Shown here in pieces: positions 10,785 through 45,632 of a stretch of DNA of 64,000 nucleotides. Origin of the DNA: Pristiophorus japonicus (taxonomy: Eukaryota); assembly GCF_044704955.1 (NCBI RefSeq), contig NC_091979.1:47988001-48052000 (forward strand). The letters are read 5' to 3'. Numbering within the stretch: the first letter of the stretch is position 1; each line of letters starts with the position of its first letter. The position numbers were made by a program, and so were the translations under genes. Under the pieces are notes generated by a model. That model made no database searches. It saw only the letters and a program-made list of their open reading frames with translations, and was not told where the DNA came from.

Positions 10785-12500
10785 AGACTGGAGCGACTAG
10801 CACAGATGTACTCAAGAGAATAGTTAAGCCAAGGACCGTAAATTTGTAACGCCAGGACTTGGATAACATTCAGGCTTGGGTTGACAAGTGGGAGCCAACA
10901 TTTACGCCACATAAATGCTAAACAACGACCGTCTCCAACAAGGGAAAGCCGAACCACCTCCCACAATGACAACATCATTGCTGAGCTCTCTACCATCTTG
11001 GGGATCACCACAGCCCAAAAGCTTAACTGGACCAACCATATCAACACCATGGCTACAAAAATTACAAAGTGCTGTAATACAGAGGGACCTGGGGGTCCTT
11101 GTGCATGAAACACAAAATGTTAGTATGCAGGTTCAGCAAGTAATCAGGAAGGCACATGGAATGTTGGCCTTTATTGCAAGGGGGTTAGAGTATAAAAGCA
11201 GAGCAGTCCTGCTACAAATGTACAGGGTATTAGTGAGGCTAGACCTGGAATATTGTGTACAGTTTTGGCCTCCGTATTTAAGGAAGGATCACCATCATCG
11301 TCATCATCATAGGCCGTCCCTCGGAATTGAGGAAGATTTGTTTCCACTCTCAACAGGAGTTCTTAGGTGGCTGAACAGTCCAATACGAGAACCACAGTCT
11401 CGGTCACAGGGGGGACCGATAGTCATTGAGGGAAGGGGTGGGTGGGATTGGTTTGCCGCACGCTCTTTCCGCTGTCTGCGCTTGATTTCTGTTTGCTCTC
11501 AGCGCAGAGACTCAAGAAGCATATACTTGCATTGGAGGCTGTTCAGAGAAGGTTCACTGGGTTGATTCCAGAGATGAGGGGGTTGACTTATGAAAATAGG
11601 TTGAGTAGGTTGGGCCTCTACTCATTGGAGTTCAGAAGAATGAGAGGTGATCTTATCGAAACTTATAAGATAATGAGGGGGGCTCGACAAGGTGGATGCA
11701 GAGAGGATATTTCCATTCAAAGGGGAAACTAAAACTAGGGGACATAACCTTAGAATAAGGGGTTGCCCATTTAAAATTGAGAAATTTGTTCTCTCAGATG
11801 GTTGTAAATCTATGAAATTCTCTGCCCCAGAGAGCTGTGAAGGCTGGGTCATTGAATATGTTTAAGGCGGAGATAGACAGAATTTTGAGCGATAAGGGAA
11901 TAAAGGGTTATGGGGAGCCGCTAGAGAAATGGAGCTGAGTCCATGATCAGATCAGCCATGATCTTACTGAATGGCAGAGCAGGCTCGAGGGGCCAAATGG
12001 CCTACTCCTGCTCCTATTTCTTATGTTCTTACAAGAGCAGGGCAGAGCTTGGGTACTCTGCAATGAGTGGCTCACCTCCTGAGCCCTCAGAGCATTTCCA
12101 CCATCTACAAGTCTCAAGTCAAGAGAGTGTGATGGAATAGTCACCACTCTCCTGCCAGTGGATTCAATATCCTTCTTCTTAACCACTAGAGCATTGTGGC
12201 CACAGTATGCACTATCTACAGGATGTACTGCAGCAACTCACCCAGATTGCTTTGACAGAGCACTTCCTAGCCTCTACTACCAAAAAGGACAAGAGCAACA
12301 ATATCATAGGAGCACCATCATCACAAGTCCCACAGCATCGTGACTTGGACAAATATCAATGTTTCTTCCTCAATGCAGGGAAAAATCCTGAGATTTCCCA
12401 CCTAATACCATCGCCACAAGGACAACAGTGCTTCAGAAAGGCCCATTGTTGCCTACTCACATCGGCAACTCAGGATGAAAAATAAATTCAGCCTTGAAGT
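10785..12500 (+). mobile_element. Old CR1/L2-group LINE fragment hosting a CR1 (11060-12030) that itself hosts an RTE fragment (11289-11515, minus)
   Basis: ILGITTAQKLNWTNHINTMATK continues after 12030 (agagcagggcagagc...). CR1 RT motifs lie in between; RTE (cat)n tail at 11289. Confidence 0.75.
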
Positions 12501-12699
12501 TTTGGCCTCATCCAATAAACAAATTGGCAGGAGTGCCAATTACCTGAACTGCTTTGTCTGGATGGTGTTGAACTACTTGACAGTTGTTGCTACTACATTC
12601 ATCCAGGTGAGTGGTGACTAGTCAGCACTGAAATGTTTAAAACAAAAATGCATAGAACAAAGAAATGCCACGAAGCTCATCAAGTCCATCCCTCTCTTT

Positions 12700-14126
12700 G
12701 GGCTCAAAATGGCGGGGCTCAAAATGGCCCATGCCAATTTTTGGCGCACTCACCCGAGTTGCGCAGCTTTTCTACGTTTCCAAGCGTGCCGATAAAAGAC
12801 GTCCTGACTTTGGCCGCCGTCAGGCCTCTCCCAGGTCATCGTGCAGCGTGGCCAGTCGAGTCGGGGGCGGAGCCAGTGTCCCGCACTGAAAACAGTGCCC
12901 GGACGTCTGCACATGCGCATTGCAGTGTGCGCGCATGCGCAGTAGCTCCTCGCCCCCAGCATCTCTGTGTGCGTCCCACCCCTATCCCAGGCTGCGTGGC
13001 CAAATATTAAACCGACCCAACTCTCCTGCTTCGTCACGGGCTTTTACCCTCATGATATCGAAGTCACCCTCCTGAGAAATCGGAAGCCGATCACCGACAC
13101 GGAATCCAGTGGCATCCTGCCCAACCACGACGGAACCTACCAGCTGACGAGATGGGCTAAGATCGGTGGCTGGGAGCCACCTATTTCTGTCAGTATGAGC
13201 AGAGTGACAACACAGGAGTGAAGAACCGAGACTGGGACGGGACATTCCGAGTGACTCCAGGATCTCTAAAGGGAACAAATCTCAGTTTGATCGTTGGAAT
13301 TGTGATTGCTGCCATCACCTGATTGCTCTGGTCATCGGTGGCATTATGTGGAAGAAGAGAGGAGGAGAGAAGAAATCTGGTTACAGCCCAGCAAACCCTG
13401 CTGAAAAAGGAGAATCATCCTCAAACTCATCAGCCGAGGCCTGAGGCTGGTCCCGAAGTGAAGGTCCTTGGGACTGGAATCTGGACTTGCTGCGTCGCTG
13501 GGAGGATTCATTCAGAAGCAATCCCCATTCTGGATCTTCATTTGGTTTGATTGATTGTCACTGGCTGCTTTTAGTGTTTATAGTAATCTGTAATGTTCCT
13601 GGGCTGAAGATGAAGGTAGGGTAGGACTTGCATCTATTTTTTATTAGGATATTTTGAAAAAAAATTATGTAAATATGTTTTGTCTCTTTACTTCTTTTAT
13701 TTTTGTAGTTTAAGCTTCCATGAATGCTTCTGTTGTATAGTAAATTAACTTTGTGAAGTTTGTCATATGATGTCCTGTATAACTGTTTGATCCTATTCAC
13801 ATTCTTTAGTCAAGTCATTAAGTTTTGCTGGCCTCCGATGTACCTACCTGCGCTGATTTCTTAACTCTCCCCACCGGTTTTCACAAGCGGCCACATACGC
13901 TGGCCTAAGTTAGTTTGGCGTAACTATTAGCTGGCCAAAGTGGCTAAATGGCCAAAACAGGCGTAGGTAGCTGGTAAAGCCCCCTTTTGAAAAAAAAATG
14001 AAACTAAAAAAATCCTAACTAACTCACTTACACTGACGCAAATTGAATGTGCAAAATGTAGATTTTTAAAATACTCCAGAAAAATCAAGTTGCTCCAAAA
14101 AAAAAATCCTGGGCAATTTTGAGCCC
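12700..14126. mobile_element. Non-autonomous PIF/Harbinger element enclosing the MHC class I fragment
   Basis: TIRs gggctcaaaatggc(cc) at 12700/12714 and gggcaattttgagccc at 14111-14126. The reverse complement of the right arm aligns with the left end of the Harbinger at 54909. Confidence 0.85.
13002..13444 (+). pseudogene. Processed (intronless), 5'-truncated MHC class I heavy-chain pseudogene fragment: alpha3 Ig-C1, TM, cytoplasmic tail
   Basis: LSCFVTGFYPHDIEVTLLRN...GILPNHDGTYQL..W, frameshift, ATYFCQYEQ...WDG...LIVGIVIAAI, frameshift, LIALVIGGIMWKKRGGEKKSGYSPANPAEKGESSSNSSAEA*. No introns between the domains; frameshifts at ~13170 and ~13318. Confidence 0.9.
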
Positions 14127-15349
14127 ATAGTAACTGACATGAATGGGACAGCAGGCATTTGCTCACTACCACAGCTGCTATTGTGAGGTTGCAAATAGTT
14201 ATGATTATGAAATGCTCTGTTTATTTTGTACTGTCAGGTGTGTTTGGAGGAAGATAAATGACTGAATTCATTACACACATTTAACACTTCAATCATGCTG
14301 GCTTATAGTCGTGTGCAGCCACAGGAAATCTGTATTCTCAAACTGTCCATCCATTTATTGGCTTTATCTAGTAATCGCAAAAAGGAATTGCTCATTATTT
14401 GCAGTTATTAACACTGCACACAATACCAAAAATTTCAGAAAGAATCTTTGCTATTCTCACTTAATTTGAGCTTTCCCTTACTGAAGGTCATTAAATCTTT
14501 GCAAAATCGGGATGATGCGGGCCGGGTATCCTCTGTGTGATTAAAGCTTGAATTGTTCATCATACACTTACTTGGTGCAGGTAGTGGGACCAGTTTGGCT
14601 TTGGATTCTTTCAAAATGGAAGCCACGTGGATGTACCTCAATGGCAAGGTCAGGAATATTATGACCTGCAGCACAACACTCTGTGGCGCACCGTGCTGGA
14701 GTAGCGATATGTTGCGAAACCCACTCTGCTTTTTTAAAATTATGTTGAACTCATAAATAATTAATAACAGCCAGCAAAAACACAAATCCAATCTGTGTGT
14801 GGAATAAATTCATCAGATCTGTGTGAATCACATCAAATAAATCAGTTGTGACTGCTCACCCCATTAGTTATGCAGCCTGACACCACTCGGTGGATTGTTT
14901 TCCATAAATTACCATCGCCCAAAGCCTTTCCGTTTTATTATGGTGTATGGAATTTTTGTGCGCCACACTAAATTACTTTTCATTAGTACACTTATTCATT
15001 GAATGCAGTGATCTAACTGGGCACGAATGGTAAGGCTCATCCGCATGTAATGACCATTTCAGTTTTTTTTGGTAACATTATCTTTCTTCAACGGCAACTT
15101 TAATGTACATTTAAGGCAAGTTCCTTCGTCACTCAATGGAACAGAATATTCTGTTTTGTTCGAAAATGACAATTTTTAACTATGGCGCATTAGCTAATGG
15201 TAATAATGTTCGCTAGGAGTTACATTCTGGCTTAAATTATAAATTGTCAGGAAGCAACAATTCTCCTGTTTCTCTCTCTCCCCCCCAATAGGTTATTGGA
15301 ATAACTGCGGATTGACAAAGTGCATTTGCTTTGTTTACAATTGATATTG

Positions 15350-15787
15350 AAAGACTTACATTTCTGTAGCGCCTTTCACGACCACTGTACGTCCCAAAGC
15401 GCTTTAAAGCCAATTAAGTACTTTTGAAGTGTAGTCACTGTTGCAATGTGGAAAATGTGGCAGCTTATTTGCATACAGCAAGCTCCCACAAACAGCAATG
15501 CGATAATGACCATATAAACTGTTTTTGTTATGTGTGTTGATTGAGGGATAAATATTGGCCAGGACCCCGGGGATAACTGCCCTGCTCTTCTTCCAAATAG
15601 CATCATGGGATCTTTAACATCCACCTGAGTGAACAGACGGGACCTCGGTTTAATGTCTCTTCCAAAAGGCAATGCAGCACTCCCTCAGCACTGCACATTC
15701 CAGATTTATGTGCTCTGGAATGGGACGTGAACCTACAACCTCCTGACCCAGAGGTGAGTATGCTACCCACTGAGCCACAGCTGTCAC
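15350..15787 (-). mobile_element. Deu-type tRNA SINE, near intact
   Basis: tRNA-like head at ~15700-15787, conserved core, LINE-like tail aaagacttacattt; three other copies in the window. Confidence 0.75.
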
Positions 15788-22934: not shown

Positions 22935-24110
22935 AATCATAGAATGATACAGTACAGAAGGAGGCCATTCGGCCCATCCTGCCTGTGCCGGCTCTTTGCT
23001 GGAGCTATTCAATTAATCCCACTCCTTTTCTCTTTCCCTATGACCCTATAATTTTTTCCCTTCAAGTATTTATCCAATTCCCTTTTGAATGTTACTATTG
23101 AATCTGTTTCCATCACTCTTTCAGGCAGTGCATTTCAGATCACAACTCGCTGTGGACCTTGTCCCCACTAAAAGTCTAACACACACACTTATTTTATTAG
23201 AAGAACATCTCAAAACCAAAAATATAATATCGAATAATCAGCATGGATTTCAAAAGAGAAAGTCTTGCTTGACCAACCTCATTGAATTTTTTGAAGAGGT
23301 AACAGAGAGAGTAGACAATGGTAATGCAGTAGATGTAATTTATCTAGATTTTCAAAAGGCCTTCGATAAGGTGCCTCATAATAGACTGATGAACAAGGTC
23401 AGAGAATGCGGAGTCAGGGGACAAGTAACAGAATGGATAGCTAGCTGGCTTCAAGACAGAAAGCAGAGATTCACAGTGGCAGAAGGTGGGTAGTGGTGTT
23501 TCACAAGGATCAGTGCTGAGACCACTATTGTTCACAATTTATATTAACGATTTAGACTTTGAAAAAACACAATTTCTAAATTTGCGAATGACACCAAATT
23601 GAGGCGTGGGGGAGGGGGCTGAGGAGGACTGCAACAAATTAAAGGAAGACATTAATAATCTTACAGAATGGAATACAAAATTATGAAAGGTTTTTAGAAT
23701 GGATACAAAGAGAATTTTTCCACTTGTGGAGAAGAGCATAACTAGAGGCCGTCAATATAAGATAGTCACCAAGAAATCCAATAGGGAATTCAGAAGAAAC
23801 TTCTTTACCCAAAGAGTGGTGAGAATGTGGAACTCGTTACCACAGGGAGTGGTTGAAGCGAATAGTGTAGAGTGGAAGCAAGTCTTCCTCGATTCTGAGG
23901 GACTGCCTATGATGATGATGATAATGATGATGATGGAGATGTATTTAAGGGGAGGCTAGACAAGCATATGAGGGAGAAGGGATCAGAGTGTTAAGCAGAT
24001 AGATTTAGATGAGGAAAGACGGGAGGAGGCTCGAGTGATGCATAATCGCCGGCATGGACCGATTGGGTCGAATGGCCTGTTTCTGTGCCATATATCCTAT
24101 GTAATGCTTT
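22935..24110. mobile_element. CR1 fragments (minus tail 22935-23150; plus RT and tail 23195-24110) with a ~65-nt RTE tail insert at 23868-23935
   Basis: QHGFQKRKSCLTNLIEFFEEVT...YLDFQKAFDKVPH; RRNFFTQRVV. Confidence 0.85.
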
Positions 24111-29752: not shown

Positions 29753-32700
29753 CATAGAAACATAGAAACATAGAAAATAGGTGCAGGAGTAGACCATTCG
29801 GCCCTTCGAGCCTGCACCACCATTCAATAAGATCATGGCTGATCATTCACCTCAATACCCCGTTCCTGCTTTCTCTCCATACCCCTTGGTCCCTTTAGCC
29901 ATAAGGGCCACATCTAACTCCCTCTTGAATATATCCAACAAACTGGCATCAACAACTCTGCGGTAGGGAATTCCACAGGTTAACAACTCTTGAGTGAAGA
30001 AGTTTCTCTTCATCTCAGTCCCAAATGGCTTACCCCTTATCGTTAGACTGTGACCCCTGGTTCTGGACTTCCCCAATATTGGGAACATTCTTCCTGCATC
30101 TAACCTGTCTAAATCCATCAGAATTTTAAACATTTCTATGAGATCCCCTCTCATTCTTCCGAACTCCAGTGAATACAAGCCCAGTTGATCCAGTCTTTCT
30201 TGATATGTCAGTCCCGCCATCCCGGGAATCAGTTTGGTGAACCTTCGCTGCACTCCCTCAATAGCAAGAATGTCCTTCCTCAAGTTAGGAGACCAAAACT
30301 GCACACAATACTCCAGGTGTGGCCTCACCAAGGCCCTGTACAACTGTAGTAACACCTCCCTGCCCCTGTACTCAAATCCCCTCGCTATGAAGGCCAACAT
30401 GCCATTTGCTTTCTTAACCGCCTGCTGTACCTGCATGCCAACCTTCAATGACTGATGTACCATGACACCCAGGTCTCGTTGCACCTCCCCTTTTCCTAAT
30501 CTGTCACCATTCAGATAATAGTCTCTCAGGGCCTTGGTGAGGCCACACCTGGAGTATTGTGTGCAGTTTTGGTCTCCTAACTTGAGGAAGGACATTCTTG
30601 CTATTGAGGGAGTGCAGCGAAGGTTCACCAAACTGATTCCCGGGATGGCGGGACTGACATATCAAGAAAGACTGGATCAACTGGGCTTGTATTCACTCTG
30701 TCTCTCTGTTTTTATCACCAAAGTGGATAACCTCACATTTATCCACATTATACTTCATCTGCCATGCATTTGCCCACTCATCTAACCTATCCAAGTTACT
30801 CTGCAGCCTCATAGCATCCTCCTCGCAGCTCACACTGCCACCCAACTTAGTGTCATCCGCAAATTTGGAGATACTACATTTAATCCCCTCGTCTAGATCA
30901 TTAATGTACAGTGTAAACAGCTGGGGCCCCAGCACAGAACCTTGCTACCCCACTAGTCACTGCCTTCTGAAAAGTATCCATTTACTCCTACTCTTTGCTT
31001 CCTGTCTGACAACCAGTTCTCAATCCACGTCAGCACACTACCCCCAATCCCATGTGCTTTAACTTTGCACAATTATCTCTTGTGTGGGACATTGTCGAAA
31101 GCCTTCTGAAAGTCCAAATACACCACATCAACTGGTTCTCCCTTGTCCACTCTACTGGAAACATCCTCAAAAAATTCCAGAAGATTTGTCAAGCATAATT
31201 TCCCTTTCACAAATCCATGCTGACTTGGACGTATCATATCACCTCTTTCCAAATGCGCTGCTATGACATCCTTAATAATTGATTCCATCATTTTACCCAC
31301 TACCAATATCAAGCTGACCGGTCTATAATTCCCTGTTTTCTCTCTCCCTCCTTTTTTAAAAAGTGGGGTTACATTGGCTACCCTCCACTCGATAGGAACT
31401 GATCCAGAGTCTATGGAATGTTGGAAAATGACTGTCAATGCATCTACTATTTTCAAGGCCACCTCCTCAAGTACTCTGGGATGCAGACCATCAGGCCCTG
31501 GGGATTTATCGGCCTTCAATCCCATCAATTTCCCCAACACAATTTCCCGACTAATAAGGATGTTCCTCAGTTCCTCCTTCTTACTAGACCCTCTGACCCC
31601 TTTTATATCCGGAAGTTTGTTTGTGTCCTCCTTCGTGAATACCGAACCAAAGTACTTGTTTAATTGGTCTGCTATTTCTTTGTTCCCGTTATGACTTCCC
31701 CTGATTCTGACTACAGAGGACCTACATTTGTCTTCACGAACCTTTTTCTCTTTACATATCTATAGAAACTTTTGCAGTCCGTCTTAATGTTCCCTGCAAG
31801 CTTCCTCTCGTACTCTATTTTCCCTGCCCTAATCAAACCCTTTGTCCTCCTCTGCTGAGTTCTAAATTTCTCCCAGTCCCCGGGTTCACTGCTATTTTTG
31901 GCCAATTTGTATGCCACTTCCTTGGCTTTAATACTATCCCTGATTTCCCTTGATAGCCACGGTTGAGCCACCTTCCCTTTTTTATTTTTACGCCAAACAG
32001 GGATGTACAATTGTTGTAGTTCATCCATGTGGTCTCTAAATGTCTGCCATTGCCCATCCACAGTCAACTCCTTAAGTATCATTCGCCAATCTATCCTAGC
32101 CAATTCATGCCTCATACCTTCAAAGTTACCCTTCTTTAAGTTCTGGACCATGGTCACTGAATTAATTGTTTCATTCTGCATCCTAATGTAAAATTCCACC
32201 ATATTATGGTCACTCTTTCCCAAGGGGCTTCGCACAACGAGATTGCTAATGAATCCTCTCTCATTACACAACACCCAGTCTAAGATGGCCTCCCCCCTAG
32301 TTGGTCTGGAAAACCATCCCTTATGCACTCCAGGAAATCCTCCTCCACCGTATTGCTTCCAGTTTGGTTAGCCAAATCTATATGCATATTAAAGTCACCC
32401 ATGATAACTGCTGCACCTTTATTGCATGCACCCCTAATTTCCTGTTTGATGCCCTCCCCAACATCACTGCTATTGTTTGGAGGTCTGTACACAACTCCCA
32501 CTAATGTTTTTTGCCCTTTGGTGTTCTGCAGCTCTACCCATATAGATTCCACATCATCCAAGCTAATGTCCTTCCTAACTATTGCATTAATTTCCTCTTT
32601 AACCAGCAATGCTACCCTACCTCCTTTTCCTTTTATTCTATCCTTCCTGAATGTTGAACACCAATGGATGTTGAGTTCCCAGCCCTGATCATCCTGGAGC

Positions 32701-34590
32701 CACGTCTCTGTAATCCCAATCACATCATATCTGCTAACATCTATTTGCACAGTTAATTCATCCACCTTATTATGGATACTCCTTGCATTAAGACACAAAG
32801 CCTTCATGCTTGTTTTTTTTACACCCTTTGTCCTTTTAGAATTATGATGTAGCATGACCCTTTTTGTTTCTTGCCTTTGTTTACTCGGCCTTCCACTATT
32901 GCTTTTTACCTTTCTACCATCTGTTTCTGACTGCATATTACTTCGCCCTATCTCGCTGCATTGGTTCCCATCCCCCTGCCATATTCGTTTAAACACTCCC
33001 GAACAGCATTAGCAAATGTTACCCCCAGGACATCAGTTCCAGTCCTGCCCAAGTGCAGACCGTCCCTTTTGTACAGGTCCCACTTCCTCCAGAACTAGTT
33101 CCAATGTCCCAGGAATTTGAATTCCTCCCTCTTGCACCACTGCTCAAGCCACGTATTTATTCTAACTATCCTGCTCCCTCAACTCTGATTAGCACGTGGC
33201 ACTGGTAGCAATCCAGAGATTACTACCTTTGAGGTCCTACTTTTTAATTTAACTTCTAGCTCCCTAAATTCAGCTTGTAGGACCTCTCCCCGCTTCTTAC
33301 CTATATCGTTGGTACCTACATGTACCACGACAACTGGCTGTTCACCCTCCCTCTCCAGAATGCTCTGCAGCCGCTCCGAGACATCATTGACCCTTGCACC
33401 AGGGAGGCAACATACCATCCTGGAGTCTCGGTTGCGGCCGCAGAAACTCCTATCTATTCCCCTTACAATAGAGTTCCCTATCACTATAGCTCTCCCACTC
33501 TTTTTCCCACCCTTTTGTGCAGCAGAGCCACCCATGGTGCCATGAACCTGGCTGTGGTGCCTTTCCCTGGTCAGTCATCTCCCCCAACATATCCAAAACG
33601 GTATATCTGTTTTGGAGGGAGATGACCGCAGGGGACTCCTGCACTGCCTTCCTGCTCTTGCCTTGTCTCTTGGTCACCCATTCACTATCTGTCCCAACCC
33701 TTACCTGCGGTGTGACCAGCTCACTAAATGTGCTATCCACAACATTCTCAGCATCACGCATGCTCCAGAGTGAGTCCATCCGCAGCTCCAGTGCCGTCAT
33801 GTGGTCTGTCAGGAGCTGCAGCTGGACGCACTTCCCGCACACATAGTTGTCAGGGACACTGGAAGCGTCCCTGACTTCCCACATAGCACAGGCAGAGCAT
33901 GACATGGGTCCGAGCTCTCCTGCCATGACTTAACCCTTAAATTAATTTACTTACTAAAATATACTTAAACACCAAACAGCTACTTAGTAGTTCGCTGCCA
34001 ATTAAGGCAATCTAAAAGTCAGTCTAAAAGAGAGTTATACTTACCAGTCAAACAGCCAACCACTTACCAGCTTGGCTGTGACATCACCTCTCGATTTCAC
34101 ACCCCTCTATCTTTGTCTGCAACTGGTTGGGCTGGTCTCTGGGCCTCCGTCTCCTATTCTCACACTCCTTATCAGCTGCACTGGTGGGAAAAACAAGACA
34201 AAACAGCACCAGTCACCCCCACTTGCCTGAACTCACCCACTTACCAAACTCACAAATGCCACTCTATGCTGTTGCACTCCATGCTCTGCACGAGCTGCCT
34301 CTTTTTAAACTGTATATAGGTCAGATGACTCACAACTGGTCAGTCGTTTACAGAACTGGTTTTAACTAGCTGCTAATTGCCTCCTACTGGAGAGTTACCT
34401 TGTTTTTCTCTGCCTAAACCTGAAAGATTCCCAACTATTTAACTTTTCCCCTTTAAATTAAACTGCTACTTACTTAGAAGCTACTGGCAATTGCCACTAA
34501 CAATTTACCCCAGCTTCCAAATGTTTAAAGAGAATAACCCTTAAAACTCACCCACTTATCAAACTCACAAATGCCACTCGATGCTGTTGC
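29753..34590 (-). mobile_element. Near full-length CR1 LINE: 5'UTR, ORF1 (Cys-rich N-terminus plus SGNH esterase), ORF2 (APE and RT), (TTCTATGT)n tail
   Basis: CSACAMWE..CGKC; VIGNSIVRGI...CCLPGA...VHVGTND; NARSIHNK, GITETW, MGDFN; YLDFQKAFD, KFADD. Confidence 0.93.
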
Positions 34591-35710
34591 TGCTGTGCTG
34601 ACGTGGATTGAGAACTGGTTGTCAGACAGGAAGCAAAGAGTAGGAGTAAATGGGTACTTTTCAGAATGGCAGGCAGTGACTAGTGGAGTACCGCAAGGCT
34701 CTTTACTGGGGCCCCAGCTGTTTACATTGTACATTAATGATTTAGACGAGGGGATTAAATGTAGTATCTCCAAATTTGCGGATGACACTAAGTTGGGTGG
34801 CAGTGTGAGCTACGAGGTAGATGCTATGAGGCTGCTGAGTGATTTGGATAGGTTAGGTGAGTGGGCAAAGGCATGGCAGATGAAGTATAATGTGGATAAA
34901 TGTGAGGTTATCCACTTTGGTGGTAAAAACAGAGAGACAGACTATTATCTGAATGGTGACAGATTAGGAAAAGGGGAGGTGCAAAGAGACTTGGGTGTCA
35001 TGGTACATCAGTCATTGAAGGTTGGCATGCAGGTACAGCAGGCGGTTAAGAAAGCAAAAGGCATGTTGCCCTTCATAGCGAAGGGATTTGAGTACAGGGG
35101 CAGGGAGGTGTTACTACAGTTGTACAGGGCCTTGGTGAGGCCACACCTGGAGTATTGTGTACAGTTTTGGTCTCCTAACTTGAGGAAGGACATTCTTGCT
35201 TTTGAGAGAGTGCAGCAAAGTTTCACCAGACTGATTCCCGGGATGGCGGGACTGACCTATCAAGAAAGACTGGATCAACTGGGCTTGTATTCACTGGAGT
35301 TCAGAAGAATGAGAGGGGATCTCATAGAAACATTTAAAATTCTGACGGGTTTAGACAGGTTAGATGCAGGAAGAATGTTCCCAATGTTGGGGAAGTCCAG
35401 AGCCAGGGGTCACAGTCTGAGGATAAGGGGTAAGCCATTTAGGACCGAGATGAGGAGAAACTTCTTCACCTAGAGAGTGGTGAACCTGTGGAATTCTCTA
35501 CCACAGAAAGTTGTTGAGGCCAATTCAATAAATATATTCAAAAAGGAGTTAGATGTAGTCCTTACTATTAGGGGAATCAAGGGGTATGGCGAGAAAGCAG
35601 GAATGGGGTACTGAGGTTGCATGTTCAGTCATGAACTCATTGAATGGCGATGCAGGCTCGAAGGGCCGAATGGCCTACTCCTGCACCTATTTACTATGTT
35701 TCTATGTTTC
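34590..35710 (+). mobile_element. CR1 3' portion (RT C-half and tail)
   Basis: 300-aa ORF with SGVPQGSLLGP..KFADDTK; tail ctatgtttctatgtttc. Confidence 0.93.
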
Positions 35711-37630
35711 TTCACATATCTATAGAAGCTTTTGCAGTCAGTCTTTACGTTCCCGGCAAACTTCCTCTCATACTCTATTTTCCCCCTCCTAATTAAACCC
35801 TTTGTCCTCCTCTGCTGAATTCTAAATTTCTCCCAGTCCTCAGGTTTGTTGCTTTTTCTGGCCAATTTATATGCCGCTTCCTTGGATCTAACACCATTCT
35901 TAATTTCCCTTGTTAGCCACGGTTGAGCCACCGTCCTTGTTTTATTTTTACTCCAGACAGGGATGTACAACTGTTGAAGTTCATCCATGTGATCTATAAA
36001 TGTTTGCCATTGCCTATCCACCGTTAACCCTTTAAGTATAATTTGCCAGTCTATTCTATCCAATTCACACCTCATGCCATCAAAGTTAGCTTTCCTTAAG
36101 TTCAGGACCCTAGTTTATGAATTAACTGTGTCACTCTCCAACTTAATAAAGAATTCTACCATATTATGGTCACTCTTCCCCAAGGGGCTTCGCACAACAA
36201 GATTGTTAATTAGTGCTTTCTCATTACACATCACCCAGTCTCGGATGGCCAGCTCTCCAGTTGGTTCCTCGACATATTGATCAAGAAAACTATCCCGAAT
36301 ACACTCCAGGAAATCCTCCTCCACCGCATTGCTACCAGTTTGGTTAGCCCAATGTATATGTAAATTAAAGTCGCCCTTGATAACTGCTGTACCTTTATTG
36401 CTTGTTTGATGCTGTCCCCAACCTCACTACTACTGTTTGGTGGCCTGTACACAACTCCCACCAGCGTTTTCTGCCCTTTGGTATTACTTAGCTCCACCCA
36501 TACTGATTCCACATCATCCAAGCCAATGTCCTTCCTTACTATTGCATTAATTTCCTCTTTAACCAGCAACGCCACCCCGCCTCCTTTTCCTTTCTGTCTA
36601 TCCTCCCTAAATGTTGAATACCCCTGGATGTTGACTTCACAGCCTTGGTCACCCTGGACCAATGTCTCTGTGATGCCAATTGCATCATATCCATTAACTG
36701 CTACCTGCGCAGTTAATTTGTCCACCTTATTGCAAATACTCGTCGCATTGAGGTACAGAGCCTTCAGGCTTGACTTTTTAACACACTTTGCCCCTTTAGA
36801 ATTTTGCTGTAATGTGACCCTTTTTGTTTTTTGCCTTTGGTTTCTCTGCCCTCCACTTTTACTATTCTCCTTTCTATCTTTTGCCTCTGTCTCCCTTTTA
36901 TTTCTCTCTGCCTCCCTGCATAGATTCCCTGCCATATTAGTTTAACTCCTTCCCAACAGCACTAGCAAACACTCTCCCCAGGACATTGGTTCCGGTCCTG
37001 CCCAGCTACAGACCGTCCGGTTTGTACTGGTCCCACCTCCCCCAGAACCGGTTCCAATGCCCCAGGAATTTGAATCCCTCCCTTCTGCACCACTCCTCAA
37101 GCCACGTATTCATCTGAGCTATCCTGCGATTCCTACTCTGACTAGCACGTGGCACTGGTAGCGATCCTGAGATTACTACTTTTGAGGTCCTACTTTTTAA
37201 TTTAGCTCATAGCTCCCTAAATTCGTCTCATAGGACCTCATCCCATTTTTTTACCTATATCGTTGGTACCTATATGCACCACGGCAACTGGCTTTTCACC
37301 CTCCCTTTTCAGAATGCCCTGCACCCGCTCCGAGACATCCTTGACCCTTGCACCAGGGAGGCAACATACCATCCTGGAGTCTTGGTTGCGGCCGCAGAAA
37401 CGCCTATCTATTCCCCTTACAATTGAATCCCCTATCACTATCGCTCTCCCACTCTTTTTCCTGCCCTCCTGTGCAGCAGAGCCACCCACAGTGCCATAAA
37501 CTTGGCTGCTTCTGCCTTCCCCTGATGACTCATCCTCCTCAACAGTACCCAAAGCGGTGTATCTGTTTTGCAGGGGGATGACCACAGGGAACCCCTGCAC
37601 TACCTCCCTTCCACTGCTCTTCCTGTTCCA
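35710..37630 (-). mobile_element. CR1 5' portion (ORF1 esterase and APE endonuclease), lacking its RT half
   Basis: VIGDSIVRGI..VHIGTND; GITET; GVVYRPP; LGKSDHN. Confidence 0.9.
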
Positions 37631-37739: not shown

Positions 37740-40700
37740 CGGGGTGCACACATTTTCGATGAAATGTCCATCTATAATGCTAAATATAAAATGGAATGGC
37801 TTACCCGTAGCCATGGAACTGGACACTGGCGCTAGCCAATCCATCATGGATGTTTGAGAGACTGTGGTGCAACAAGGCACTCAGACCAGCCCTGAGCCCC
37901 ATCCACATGAAACTGAGAACGTGCACCAAAGAGCTCATCACTGTCCTGGGTAGCACCATGGTCAAGGTCACCTACGAGGGCCCGGTGCACGAAATGCCAC
38001 TACGGATTGTCCCGGGCGATGGCCCCACACTGCTTGGAAGGATCTGGCTGGGCAAAATCCGCTGGAACTGGGATGACATCCGAGCGCTTTCACATGTCGA
38101 TGAGGCCTCATGTACCCAGGTTCTTAACAAATTTCCTTCCCTTTTTGAGCCAGGCATTGGAAACTTTTCCGGGGTGTAGGTACGGATCCACTTGATCCCG
38201 AGGCACGACCCACTCACCACAAGGCGGGACCAGTACCTCACATGATGAGGGAGAGAGTGGAAATCGAGCTGGAAAGGCTGCAACATGAGGGCATCATCTC
38301 CCCAGTGGAATTCAGCGAGTGGGCCAGCCCGATTGTTCCAGTACTCAAAAGTGAGGGCACGGTCAGGATTTGCGGCGATTATAAAGTAACTATTAATCCT
38401 TTCTCGCTACAGGACCAATACCCGCTACCTAAGGCAGACAACCTATTTGCGACACTGGCAGGAGGCAAGACGTTCACCAAGCTCGACCTGACTTCGGCCT
38501 ACATGACGCAGGAGCTGGAGGAGTCTTCGAAGGGCATCACCTGCATCAACATGCACAAGGGACTGTTCATCTACAACAGATGCCCATTTGGAATTCGGTC
38601 GGCTGCAGCGATCTGCCAAAGAAACATGGAGGGCCTACTCAAGTCGGTAACACGCAAGGTGGTTTTTCAGGATGACATATTGGTCATGGTTCGGGACACC
38701 GCCGAGCACCTACAAAACCTGGAGGAGGTCCTCCAGCGACTGGATCGCATAGGGCTGCGGCTGAAGAGGTCGAACTGCTTCTTCATGGCAACAGAAGGGG
38801 AGTTTTTGGGGAGAAAGATCGCGGCGGATGGCATTCGGCCCACAGACGCCAAGACAGAGGCTATCAGGAACGCGCCCAGGCCACAGAACGTCACGGAGCT
38901 GCAGTCGTTCCTGCGACTCAACTATTTTGGTAACTTCCCACCGGTGTTAAGCACCCTCTTAGAGCCCCTACATATGTTATTGCGTAAAGGTGAGAACTGT
39001 GTATGGGGGAAAAAAACAAGTACTTGCTTTTGAGAAAGCCAGAAACATTTTATGCTCCATCAAGCTGCTTGTATTGTATAACCCATGTGAAAGACTTGTG
39101 CTAGCATGTGATACGTCGTCGTACAGAGTCGGGTATTACAACAAGCTAACATTGTGGGGAAGTTGCAACCTGTCACCTATGCTTCCAGGAGCTTGTCTAA
39201 GGCCTACAGCATGATTGAGAAAGAGGCATTAGCGTGTGTGTTCGGGGTAAAGAAAATGCATCAGTGCCTGTTTGGCCTCAAATTTCAGCTGGAAACCGAT
39301 CACAAACCCCTCATGTCCCTGTTTTCTGAAAACAAGGGGGTAAAAACTATTGCCTCAGCCCGCATACAAAGGTGGGCACTCGCGCTATCAGCTTATAACT
39401 ATACCATCCGCCACAGGCCAGGCAGAAAGAACTGTGCGGATGCTCTCAGTTGGCTACCATTGCCCACCACGAGGGTGGAAATGGCGCAGCTTGCAAACTT
39501 GTTGATGGTGGCGCAGCCCGCAGACTTGTTGATGGTCATGGAAGCGCTTGAAAATGATAAATCACTTGTCACGGCCCGCCAGATTAGGACTTGGACCAGC
39601 CAAGATCCTCTGCTGTCCCTAGTAAGAATCTGTGTATTGCATGGGAGCTGGGCCAGCATCCCCGTTGAAATGCAAGAGCTAATCAAGCCGCTCCAGCGGC
39701 GAAAGGACGAGCTGTCCATTGAGGCAGACTGCCTGTTGTGGGATAATCCAAAAAGGGCAGTGAGACGTTCATCTCGGATCTCCACAGCACTCACCCGGGT
39801 ATAGTAATGATGAAAGCAATAGCCGGATCCCACGTGTGGTGGCCCGGTATCGACTCTGACTTCGAGTCCTGTATACGGCAATGTCGCGTGTGTGCTCAGT
39901 TGAGCAATGCACCCAGAGAGGCACCACTAAGTTTGTGGTCCTGGCCCTCCAGACCATGGTCGAGGATCCATATCGACTATGCATTTCTCGGTAAAATATT
40001 CCTGGTGGTGGAGGATGCTTTTTCAAAATGGATTGAATGTGAAATAATGTCGGGAAGCACCACCACAGCCACCATTAAAAGCCTGAGGGGCATGTTTGCC
40101 ACCCACGGCCTGCCTGACATACTGGTCAGTGACAACGGGCCATGTTTCACCAGTGTTGAATGTAAAAGGAGCAAGAGTCTCCTCTTTTTAATTGCTCTTT
40201 ATGTTTCTATAATGGGGTACTGAAGTTGCATGTTTAGCCATGAACTCATTGAATGGCGTTGCAGGCTAGAAGGGCCGAATGGCCTACTCCTGCACCTATT
40301 TTCTATGTTTCTATGTAAAGAATTCATGACCCGCAATGGGATCAAACATGTCACCTCGGCCCCGTTTAAACCAGCCTCCAATGGGCAGGCAGAGGGGGCA
40401 GTACAAACAATTAAACAGAGCCTTAAACGAGTCACAGAAGGCTCACTCCAAACCCACCTGTCCCGAGTACTGCTGAGCTACCACATGAGACCCCACTCGC
40501 TCACAGGGGTGCCCCCGGCTGAGCTGCTCATGAAAAGGACACTTAAAACCAGACTCTCGCTGGTTCACTCCAACCTGCATGATCAGGTAGAGAGCAGGCG
40601 GCAGCAACAAAATGTAAACGATGGTCGCACCACTATGTCACGGGAAATTGATCTGAATGACCCTGTGTACGTGCTAAACTACGGGCTTGGTCCCAAGTGG

Positions 40701-41310: not shown

Positions 41311-42914
41311 AACTCCACTTGATACCCGAGGACAGCATAAGAGCAGCCCAGCTCAGGTTAACTTTACTCAAGGCAATGCAATGCCTGTGAATGGCAGAGC
41401 ACCTTCAGGCCTTGCAAGATTGCACACATGCAGGCTGGACAAGAGCAGACCCCTGTCCCTACATGTACTGTGAAAGTTGGGCTGGAAAAGCTGAATGTCC
41501 ACACAAAATGTATTGCAACTGTCCCTTTTCATCTGTCACACATGAGATCGTTGAGCTAGTTTTCAGAGAAAAACAAACTGAATTGCAGAATGTGATCCCA
41601 AAACACCAATAAAAATCTGGAAATTTAATGTAAAAATAGAAGGATTTAACAGTCGGTTGTTTTGAAGCAATGGTCTGGTTTGTCAGTTGTGTGTTGTTTT
41701 TTTGAGTGGTCACCGTTTTTGGAAATGGATGGTCAGTTGTTGTGAGTTTTGTCGGTTGGAATGTGTCATTTTCCCAGGGGTAAGTAAGCAGTGAGTGGTT
41801 GATGGGTCAGCGGGGTGGGAAGCTGCAGAAGAAGAGAACAGGGGGTGGAAATGAGGAGCAGAATGAAGGTAGTGAGCCATCATTAATTGTTCTCCCCCTG
41901 AAGTTTTACGGAAGTGCATATTGTGGTCATATTGCAATTTTACATTGGCAAGTACAGTACAAGTGCAGAAAGAGGTTTAAGATTCCCCAGTCAGTGTTGA
42001 ATCCTATATGTCGGAAATTCCAGAAGCTGTGTAATTGCTGGTGGTGACCGAGGAAAGTCTTGAACATGTTTAAGTGCTTTTACTTTCATAGTTCAGCCAT
42101 GAACTCATTGAATGGCGGTGCAGGCTAGAAGGGCCGAATGGCCTACTCCTGCACCTATTTTCTATGTTTCTATGAATCAAGTGTTTCAACAACTTAAAAC
42201 TCTGTCACGGTCAGGCATATGGCGTTTGTAATTTCCTCAGTGCAGGTGAATAGATGGTCAGGGAGGGTGGGAAACAGGTGGGCAGTTGAATCAGGGAGGA
42301 CGGCTGCAGTGGGCATGGAGAGATGCGAGACCACTTCACTGCTCTGGGCAGCAGAGGGGGCAGCAGAGAATGGGCATGCAACATGCCTCCCCTTTACATG
42401 CCTCAGCTGGATGGCGCTGCAGCATCACGTGCCTTTTGTGACTGACAGAGACTGCGGTTCTCCTATTGGACTGTGCAGCCACCTAAGAACTCATGTTAAG
42501 TGGGAAAGCAAGTCTTCCTCGATTCCGAGGGACTGCCTATGATGATGATGATGATCACGTGACTTTAAGACAGTGCTGAGAGGACTCATTGAGAGGTAAG
42601 TACAATAAATTGGTGTTTAAACAGAACAGAAAGGAGTGACAGAATTATATCACAGAAGATAAGTATGACACTTGCAGGAAGTGCATGCTACGCACAAGAC
42701 TTTAAAAATCTTAGATAGCTAGATAGATCACGCTAAACACAAACATTGATTTAAGCATTTTAAGGTGGCACGGTCAGTGGTAATATCAATTCCTTCATAG
42801 CGCACTGAAAGTGCAGATCTAGAACAGGCCATCTGGAGGTGGCCTTCTAACCCAATGCACAGGAAAAGCATTTGTTCTTTTCTATAGCCCTCCCCCCTCC
42901 CCTCCCCCATATCT

Positions 42915-45632
42915 AGAAATTAGGAATATTCAGGAAGGGTGAACAGAAAGGAAAAGGAGGTGGTGTAGCGTTGCTGGTTAAAGAGGAGATTAACGCAATA
43001 GTAAGGAAGGACATTAACTTGGATGATGTGGAATCGGTATGGGTGGAGCTGCGGAACACCAAGGGACAGAAAATGCTAGTGGGAGTTGTGTACAGACCAC
43101 CAAACAGTAGTAGTGAGGTTGGGGACAGCATCAAACAAGAAATTAGGGATGCATGCAATAAAGGTACAGCAGTTATCATGGGCGACTTTAATTTACATAT
43201 TAATTGGGCTAACCAAACTGGTATAGTACGGTGGAGGAGGATTTCCTGGAGTGTATTAGGGATGGTTTTCTAGACCAATATGTTGAGGGACCAACTAGAG
43301 GGCTGGCCATTCTAGACTGGGTGATGTGTAATGAGAAAGGACAACGAAGCAATCTTGTTGTGCGACGCCCCTTGGGAAGAGTGACCATAATATGGTTGAA
43401 TTCTTCATTAAGATGGAGAGTGACACATTTAATTCAGAGACTAGGGTCCTGAACTTAAAGAATGATAACTTCAATGGTATGAGACGTGAATTGGCTAAGA
43501 AAGATTGGTGAATGATTCTTAAACTGTTGACGGTGGATCGGCAATGGCAGACATTTAAAGATCACATGGATGAACTTCAACAATTGTACATCCCTGTCTG
43601 GCGTAAAAATAAAACAGGGAAGGTGGCTCAACTGTGGCTAACAAGGGAAATTAGGGATAGTGTTAAATCCAAGGAACAGCCATATAAATTGGCCAGAAAA
43701 AGCAGCAAACTTGCAAGGAGAAATTTAGAATTCAGCAGAGGAGATCAAAGGCTTTAAGTAGGAGGGGGAAAATAGAGTTTGACAGTAAGCTTGCAGGGAA
43801 CATAAAAACTGACTGCAAAAGCTTCTATAGATATGTGAAGAGAAAAAGAATAGTGAATACAAATGTAGGTCACTTGCAGTCAGAATCAAGTGAATTTACA
43901 ATGGGGAACAAAGAAATGGCAGACCAATTGAACAAATACTTTGGTTCACTAAGGAAGACACAAATAACCTTCCAGATATACTAGGGGGCCGAGGGTCTAG
44001 TGAGAAGGAGGAACTGAAGGAAATCCTTATTAGTCAGGAAATTGTGTTAGGGAAATTGATGAGATTGAAGGCCGATAAATCCCCAGGGCCTGATAGTCTG
44101 CATCCCAGAGTACTTAAGGAAGTGGCCCTAGAAATAGTGGATGGATTGGTGGTCATTTTCGAACATTCTATAAACTCTGGATCAGTTCCTATGGATTGGA
44201 AGGTAGCTAATGTAACCCCACTTTTTAAAAAAGGAGGGAGAAAACAGGGATTTATAGACCGGTTAGCCTGACATCGGTAGTGGGGAAAATGTTGGAATCA
44301 ATTATTAAAGATGAAATAGCAGCGCATTTGGAAAGCAGTAACAGAATCAGTCCAAGTCAGCATGGATTTATGAAAGGGAAATCATGCTTGAAAAATCTTC
44401 TGGAATTTTTTGAGGATGTAATTAGCAGAGTAGACAAGGGAAAACCAGTGGATGTGGTCTATTTTGGACTTTCAAAAGGCTTTAGACCAGGTCCCACACA
44501 AGAGATTAGTGTGCAAGATTAAAGCACATGTTAATGGGGGTAATGTATTGACACAGATAGAGAACTGGTTGGCAGACAGGAAACAAATAGTAGGAATAAA
44601 CGGGTCCTTTTCAGAATGGCAGGCAGTGACTAGTGGTGTACCGCAAGGTTCAGTGCTGGGACCCCAGCTATTTACAATATACATTAATGATTTAGATGAA
44701 GGAATTGAATGTAATATCTCCAAGTTTGCAGATGGCATTAAGCTGGGTGGCAGTGTAAGCTGTGAGGAGGATGCTCAGAGGCTGCAGGGTGACTTGGACA
44801 GGTTAGGGGAGTGGGCAAATGCATGGCAGATGCAGTATAATGTAGATAAATGTGAGGTTATCCACTTTGGTGGCAAAACAGGAAGGCAGAATATTATCTG
44901 AATGGTGACAGATTAAGAAAAGGGGAGGTGCAACGAGACCTGGGTGTCATGGTACATCAGTCATTGAATGTTGGCATGCAGGTACAGCAGGCGTTGAAGG
45001 CAGCAAATGGCATGTTGGCCTTCATAGCCAGAGGATTTGAGTATAGGAGCAGGGAGGTCTTACTGCAGTTGTACAGGGCTTTGGTGAGGCCACACCTTAA
45101 ATATTGTGTGCAGTTTTGGTCTCCTAATCTCAGGAAGGACATTCTTGCTATTGAGGGAGTGCAGCGAAGTTTCACTAGACTGATTCCCAGGATGGCAGGA
45201 CTGACATATGAAGAAAGACTGGAATTTAGAAGAATGAGAGGGGATCTCATTGAAACATATAAAATTCTGACAGGATTGGACAGGTTAGATGCAGGAAGAT
45301 TGTTCCCGATGTTGGGGAAGTCCAGAACCAGGGGTCACAGTCTAAGGATAAGGGGTAAGCCATTTAGGACCGAGATGAGGAGGAACTTCTTCACTCAGAG
45401 AATTGTGAACCAGTGGAACTCTCTACCACAGAAAGTTGTTGAGGCCAGTTCGTTAGATATATTCAAAAGGGAGTTAGATGTGACCCTTACGGCTAAAGGG
45501 ATCAAGGGGTATGGAGAGAAAGCAGGAATGGGGTACTGTAGTTGCATGATCAGCTATGATCATATTGAATGGTGGTGCAGGCTCGAAGGGCCGAATGGCC
45601 GACTCCTGCACCTATTTTCTATGTTTCTATGA
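42915..45632 (+). mobile_element. CR1 LINE, 5'-truncated ORF2 (APE to RT) and tail
   Basis: Series of frameshifted ORFs with GVVYRPP, KSPGPD, QHGF, SGVPQGSVLGP. Confidence 0.93.

Follow-up and report, generated by a model that had tools for sequence, protein, structure and literature searches.

How does a piece of an MHC class I gene that has lost its introns come to lie between the arms of a repeated element, and did it arrive there by retrotransposition or by another route? The question is raised by positions 12700-14126 of the window, by which we mean the whole stretch of 64,000 nucleotides of Pristiophorus japonicus DNA that was analysed. That cut-and-paste transposons capture gene fragments is well documented for plants, and for animals such captures have been catalogued. 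A first-pass annotation had proposed a spliced class I fragment inside a repeat bounded by terminal inverted repeats (TIRs), and this holds up, with alpha3, transmembrane (TM), tail, and untranslated (UTR) sequence at 13003-13597 lying within 12700-14126.

Contigs of four same-species runs were aligned to 12000-14800 at 80% likeness. The depths quoted below are sums over contigs, not copy numbers, and are used only to place a stretch in the class of unique, moderately repeated, or very abundant sequence. Runs X5 and X6 behave like RNA (their kind is unrecorded), in that class I is very deeply covered in them and the unique flanks have no depth.

Ends and parts of the element

The right TIR, at 14091-14126 on the reverse strand, is the exact end of the repeat, as indicated both by the inverted match and by the drop in depth. 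The summed depth is about 140,000 in the bin 14068-14161 and falls to about 8 from 14162 onward, which is the unique right flank, and the locus's own exact, unique contig begins at 14098. The left TIR at 12715-12748 (+) pairs with 14091-14126 over 28 nt at 79%, extended by 11 nt at 91%, and with one indel the inverted match between these two intervals reaches about 34-36 nt. The left tip is present as a 15-nt tandem duplicate (12700-12714, +), in which GGGCTCAAAATGGC at 12700-12713 is repeated exactly at 12715-12728, and the reverse complement is found with 1 mismatch at 14113-14126. Taken alone, the TIR score is within the chance range, since with ungapped scoring over 12000-15000 the best inverted-repeat score was reached by 23 of 100 shuffles, and the best pair was another pair. 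What lends it credibility is that the right TIR falls exactly where a very high-copy repeat ends.

The left boundary is less secure, being placed by the TIR only, because the summed depth in the left end region is modest (650-2,500 over 12658-12845) and another repeat adjoins it at 12470-12657. That neighbor is moderately repeated, so the element adjoins or sits within it. Just to the left of the element there is also a 20-nt inverted repeat (90%) at 12135-12154 and 12604-12623.

Between the ends come a left arm, a slot, an AT-rich module, and a right arm. The left arm (12749-12989, +) is rich in GC and resembles a CpG island; it holds a GC box (12865) and a palindrome, GCGCATGCGC (12931). The DNA runs have 12846-12992 at very high copy, and the summed depth over 12846-12939 is about 92,000 in the contigs of the four runs. 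The slot motif, GGCTGCGTGGCC at 12990-13002 (+), stands directly 5' of the class I cargo and forms its left junction. On the far side of the cargo, the AT-rich internal module (13598-13828, +) belongs to the long form of the element, is high-copy in the DNA runs, and contains a splice-donor-like AAG|GTAGGG at 13614-13622. The right arm (13829-14090, +) has the greatest summed depth of the element's parts, and from 13598 to 14161 the summed depth ranges from 38,000 to 250,000. A second GGC-loop-GCC motif, GGCTAAATGGCC, is found in the right arm at 13939-13956, which is a family hot spot of 1-nt insertions and alignment breaks, 31-136 contigs having loose ends there. For the left arm, an internal duplication of 150 nt was considered and rejected, the recurrence being limited to a 12-nt motif.

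Looking more widely, self-BLAST gave trivial matches only and no second copy of the element in the 64-kb window, which has no Ns. Rfam recognised no family in 11500-15500, hence no tRNA- or SINE-type head, and a metagenome scan with the TIR tip gave 120 chance matches, none extending past 26 nt. We conclude that this is probably a single member of a very abundant family of non-autonomous TIR elements, composed of the parts just described. Its mobility at this particular site is something that we infer, given the absent target-site duplication (TSD) and the left boundary that is not sharp in depth.

Identity and decay of the class I cargo

The cargo, 13003-13597, is 595 nt long and runs in the sense orientation, which is also that of the GC-rich left arm, through class I alpha3, TM, tail, stop codon, and a further 153 nt of 3'UTR. 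The resemblance to class I sets in with residues N-I-K at position 13003, and the first part (13003-13235, +) is the equivalent of the alpha3 exon minus its first 13 or so codons. This alpha3 piece has a Pfam C1-set match (E = 5e-11), 47 of 54 residues identical by tblastn to the shark class I protein P0157, and a top solved-structure match to 6lup, titled 'MHC class I protein'. The second part (13236-13360, +) is the equivalent of the connecting-peptide/transmembrane exon as judged by protein alignment and isoform exon edges. The third (13361-13444, +) corresponds to two cytoplasmic exons and the stop, with 35/41 and 36/41 residues identical to P0157 and P0155, respectively. The fourth (13445-13597, +) is the 5' portion of a class I 3'UTR, cut short, to which class I contigs align up to 13597.

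Three frames translate to class I, 13009-13164, 13173-13316, and 13319-13441, followed by the stop codon at 13442-13444. When the three pieces are joined (13003-13441), the nearest proteins are classical-type class I chains of Pristiophorus japonicus (81% of residues), Heptranchias perlo, and Squalus acanthias; the alpha3 piece by itself is closest to predicted proteins of Heterodontus francisci in a representative library. Between the first two frames about 4 nt are absent at 13165-13172, where class I contigs have 4 extra letters, and between the second and third 1 nt is absent after 13317, behind which other contigs have an inserted C. Nowhere in the 64 kb is there a match to alpha1 or alpha2. 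What remains in the cargo is a dead pseudogene fragment and not a functional MHC class I gene, lacking alpha1, alpha2, and a start codon and having its reading frame broken by the two frameshifts. A protein alignment that appeared to extend the likeness leftward, of 12949-13002 to the start of alpha3, was rejected as chance, 12975-12992 being element sequence in empty forms.

Exon edges were taken from predicted horn-shark proteins, namely five splice isoforms of a single class I gene and two more proteins of that species. The horn-shark alpha3 runs from VAPQVF to ..DW; one isoform omits the TM block up to ..KRR, and another omits the next 12-13 residues, up to ..ANP. The cargo is continuous over the three corresponding edges, at about 13235/13236, 13360/13361, and 13399/13400, and because the isoform-defined blocks adjoin with no intervening bases, three exon-exon joints are fused. 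The claim that the insert has no introns is thereby borne out.

One of the related predicted proteins deserves a comment of its own. P0008 (XP_067865201.1, Heterodontus francisci) is a 214-aa predicted 'CD1d2-like' protein in which about 70 residues that Pfam does not recognise (..NVKGNPKAFFRHLNT) are fused to a class I alpha3-TM-tail. Those residues may resemble a LINE ORF, and P0008 may owe its gene model to a stray piece of class I.

The 3' end of the cargo and its relation to transcripts

Class I contigs of X5 and X6, 87-89% like the cargo, align continuously from 13072 or 13213 to 13593-13597. Past 13597 they continue for at least 134 nt that are unlike the locus, and in X6 the loose end has a median of 162 nt with an agreement of 0.93. 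Several DNA contigs (83-90% alike and unbroken over the exon joints) likewise cease to match at 13597 and then continue. Because class I contigs run past 13597, the cargo ends within the 3'UTR. Direct reading of the sequence finds no poly(A) or A-run at the 3' end of the cargo, as had been reported. A CR1-type tail is absent there too; real LINE ends elsewhere in the window have a hairpin, GGCCGAATGGCC, and then ATGTTTCT repeats.

The class I sequence has company in this genome. At least 4 other intronless class I copies are seen in DNA contigs of the species (13034-13597; 83-90% alike, continuous over the exon joints), and single cargo positions have 10-21 distinct variant contigs. The summed DNA depth over the cargo climbs in the 3' direction, from about 220 to 340-410 and then to 540-560, and from this rise class I retrocopies truncated at the 5' end seem to be numerous in the genome.

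Junctions and empty forms

What the element looks like without the cargo can be read from two empty forms, which are known solely as joints in short contigs at 80% likeness. In the short form, 2-5 letters are all that separate 12992-12994 from 13829-13832 in several DNA contigs, and in run X3 the left-arm end stands immediately before 13829 in 61 contigs. In the long form, 12991/12992 is joined to 13601/13604 with 37-39 letters between. The long form has the AT-rich module 13598-13828, which is missing from the short one.

The long empty forms define where the cargo begins and ends, as the annotation had proposed that they might. Compared with them, the element sequence in this copy reaches ..GTGGCC (13001), or ..CCAAAT (13005) in one variant, before the cargo starts, and it resumes at CC, 13598. 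About 27-30 nt of the empty forms, just after the GTGGCC motif, are absent here, so the cargo replaces element sequence and is not a simple insertion. By the end points of contig and protein alignments, element likeness stops at 13001-13005 and class I likeness starts at 13003, leaving 0-3 nt (AAT, 13003-13005) that may be assigned to either side; the right junction, judged likewise by alignment end points, has an overlap of 0-1 nt.

The slot motif directly precedes the cargo, and it is at the slot that variation in the family is concentrated. This copy has GGCTGCGTGGCC, versus GGCTGAGTGGCC as read by 25/25 other contigs that cover 12995. Some of the depth in the slot region could come from other repeats with a GGCC-loop-GGCC motif, such as CR1-like LINE tails. 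A fold calculation on the slot of this copy was uninformative (z = 0), and a bacterial promoter/terminator scan gave nothing useful.

Direct reading also agrees that a TSD is lacking, around the cargo and around the element alike; the element flanks are ..CTCTTT and ATAGTA.., with no direct repeat of 2-8 nt. The element's TSD may have been lost by decay.

Origin of the cargo

The objective is then to account for a spliced, doubly truncated class I piece that has taken the place of element sequence. We consider it probable that the cargo is a break-repair patch made from a spliced class I template and is not a product of LINE retrotransposition. Repair is favored because the cargo is truncated at both ends, has no poly(A), LINE tail, or TSD, and is accompanied by a microdeletion in the recipient and, by alignment end points, minimal overlap at the junctions. 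As a mechanism, a double-strand break or stalled fork would have occurred inside the element at the slot, the break arising from excision or from the hairpin. Repair would then have proceeded by a template switch to an ectopic template or by end-joining of a cDNA fragment, replacing about 27-30 nt of the element with a 595-nt patch cut short at both ends. The template would have been either RNA or cDNA of a spliced classical-type class I transcript or an intronless genomic copy. The annotation held that the insert came through mRNA. Ultimately that is so, the exon joints being fused, but the immediate template could equally have been an intronless genomic class I copy as RNA or cDNA.

There are precedents for repair filling of this kind. 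Deletion derivatives of Ac/Ds and Mutator contain filler DNA from abortive gap repair, with foreign sequence copied by template switching. In cut-and-paste deletion derivatives that filler is usually short and from nearby DNA, whereas here it would amount to 595 nt of spliced gene sequence.

Another likeness is offered by class 2 templated sequence insertions, described as patches of double-strand-break repair with no TSD, no poly(A), a microdeletion, and microhomology (Onozawa & Aplan, PMC5110952). The cargo resembles them in having neither TSD nor poly(A), in the microdeletion of its recipient, and in being an internal piece of a transcript, and by alignment end points its junctions would have little or no microhomology. 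It differs in where it is found, since class 2 insertions have been described at experimental breaks and as human polymorphisms, and here a transposon family's recurrent variable site is what received the patch. A patch in such a place may have been made mobile by its recipient.

Whether the loaded element has spread

That last point marks the difference between a patch at one locus and a multicopy element of Pack type, in which a single capture was followed by transposition of the loaded element and at least 2 loci share both junctions. The two differ only in mobilisation, and we give the multicopy version slightly better than an even chance. One indication of it is a 204-nt contig of X6, 91% like the locus, that aligns to 13427-13613 and thus passes 16 nt beyond the right junction into the element, in a run with no depth on the window's unique flanks; yet those 16 nt are fewer than the 31 aligned letters required for a bridging record. 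One or two DNA contigs of single-copy depth join 12993 to 13228, which would suit a second loaded locus, but the joint has a 28-31-nt side that looks like a polypyrimidine-CAG intron end and may derive from a real class I gene. None of the long DNA contigs listed for the cargo (83-90% alike) follows the locus beyond 13597, where it turns to element sequence, and they are therefore copies of other intronless kinds. Junction-spanning ORFs found no other copies in the protein database, a search limited by protein length in that short shark ORFs seem to be absent there.

LINE context and the retrocopy alternative

The surroundings of the LINE ORFs are rich in repeats, with no host gene recognised there. 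CR1-like LINE 3' tails are located at 11900-12040, 22963-22974 (-), 29792-29803 (-), 35664-35675, 40273-40284, 42132-42143, and 45589-45600. They share a conserved stretch whose last part is the hairpin GGCCGAATGGCC; after it comes ..CTCCTGCACCTATTTTCTATGTTTCTATG, and 8-nt repeats close the tail. The tail motif has 12 matches in the window versus 3.2 expected, and tails occur at least 5 times in the window. The greatest summed depth of the aligned stretch, 1.6 million, is at 12000-12093. ORF fragments of LINE endonuclease and reverse transcriptase (Pfam Exo_endo_phos, RVT_1) are at 32283-32996 (-), 34571-35470 (+), 36234-36935 (-), and 38242-39030 (+).

With such machinery and so many CR1-type tails in the window, an obvious alternative is that a CR1-type LINE retrotransposed class I mRNA once into a resident element and that the 3' end and TSD were lost by later deletion. 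The cargo does share intron loss, 5' truncation, and frameshift decay with LINE-mediated processed pseudogenes; truncation inside alpha3 is typical of LINE-made copies, and the increase in cargo depth toward the 3' end fits a genome with many 5'-truncated class I retrocopies. It is unlike a processed pseudogene in that the mRNA 3' end is missing, the cargo stopping inside a UTR that in transcripts continues for at least 134 nt, in that neither junction has poly(A), a CR1 tail, or a TSD, and in that recipient sequence is replaced. Those about 27-30 nt of element are missing exactly at the cargo, and the left junction is the recurrent variable site of the family, so that retrotransposition would need an extra and precisely placed deletion. 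The annotation's alternative of a classical LINE retrocopy does not survive this, and even the version with later deletion we regard as unlikely.

A possible promoter, slot, and donor reading

The base composition of the left arm suggests a functional reading of the family, which we mention as a doubtful one. The GC content is 62% over 12700-13002, with CpG observed/expected of 0.86, and 65% over 12780-13002 with the same CpG ratio; the flanks have 0.25-0.42. The cargo lies in sense between this CpG-rich arm and the donor-like motif, which comes just after it. On these motifs one could picture the family as a putative mobile cassette of promoter, cargo slot, and splice donor, in which the CpG-island-like arm would drive transcription through a hairpin-marked slot that would repeatedly take up sense pieces of host mRNA immediately upstream of the donor, with the loaded copies transposing. 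The motifs are present and the function is putative. If the cassette reading were true, exon sequence of class I and of other genes would be scattered genome-wide, making new first exons or decoy transcripts. Contigs over the element arms are present in the RNA-like runs.

In the short empty form the slot is GGCCGAATGGCCT, 13 nt that also make up the hairpin in the tails of the CR1-like LINE. Judging by these shared letters, the uptake of cargo could be linked to the LINE reverse transcriptase.

Least of all do we favor coincidence or artefact, with a class I retro-fragment lying between unrelated repeat pieces or an assembly chimera in repeats, as might be argued from the TIR score being within shuffle range, the left boundary not being sharp in depth, and the element interior having no listed exact contig, because the left-arm end at 12991-12994 recurs in other contigs, joined there to the right parts found here (13601-13604, 13829-13832), the repeat end coincides with the right TIR, and 67-70% of the 31-mers sampled from 12400-14400 are found in four DNA runs (which may share the assembly's sample), all of which makes this very improbable.

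Relation to known transposon classes

Returning to the break-repair patch as the probable origin of the cargo, we ask how the composite would be classified. The annotation called the element a Harbinger. PIF/Harbinger elements have a 3-bp TSD of the form TWA, and no matching TWA is present, the left flank being TTT and the right flank ATA; each of these is one change away from TTA, which amounts to no evidence. Such elements also have their TIRs in common with an autonomous relative coding for a DDE transposase and a Myb-like protein, and among the ORFs of the window Pfam recognises LINE domains only. Membership in Harbinger is therefore not established.

The nearest class by anatomy is the Pack-TIR, of the Pack-MULE type, a non-autonomous TIR element with a non-functional host gene fragment between its arms. 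TIRs of a repeated family are found at both ends (the left one assigned from the TIR), and the host gene exists elsewhere, as expressed class I contigs of the same species that are 87-89% alike. Unlike a Pack-TIR, the cargo is spliced and the element is without a visible flanking TSD. With these exceptions, the element qualifies as a Pack-TIR-like chimera.

For Pack-TIRs, gap filling or fork switching, with short stretches of microhomology, has been proposed as the source of the captured gene fragments (Tan et al. 2021, PMC8277862), an origin that the features of the cargo also suit. Their survey by design discarded intronless captures of multi-exon parents (PMC8277862), and the cargo, with its three fused exon joints, fails that operational filter. 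Because the animal catalogue excluded intronless captures, spliced ones would go unreported, and for animals the class of spliced captures is unsampled. The literature searched gave no account of MHC fragments within transposons of sharks.

Significance

An RNA-derived patch at the recurrent variable site of a vertebrate TIR element would show that break repair templated by RNA or cDNA can load transposons with exon sequence, and if loaded copies move, this would be a route for exon shuffling. There is also a practical consequence for shark annotation. Isolated alpha3-TM-tail fragments can be mistaken for MHC or CD1-like genes, and they raise the apparent number of class I copies outside the MHC.
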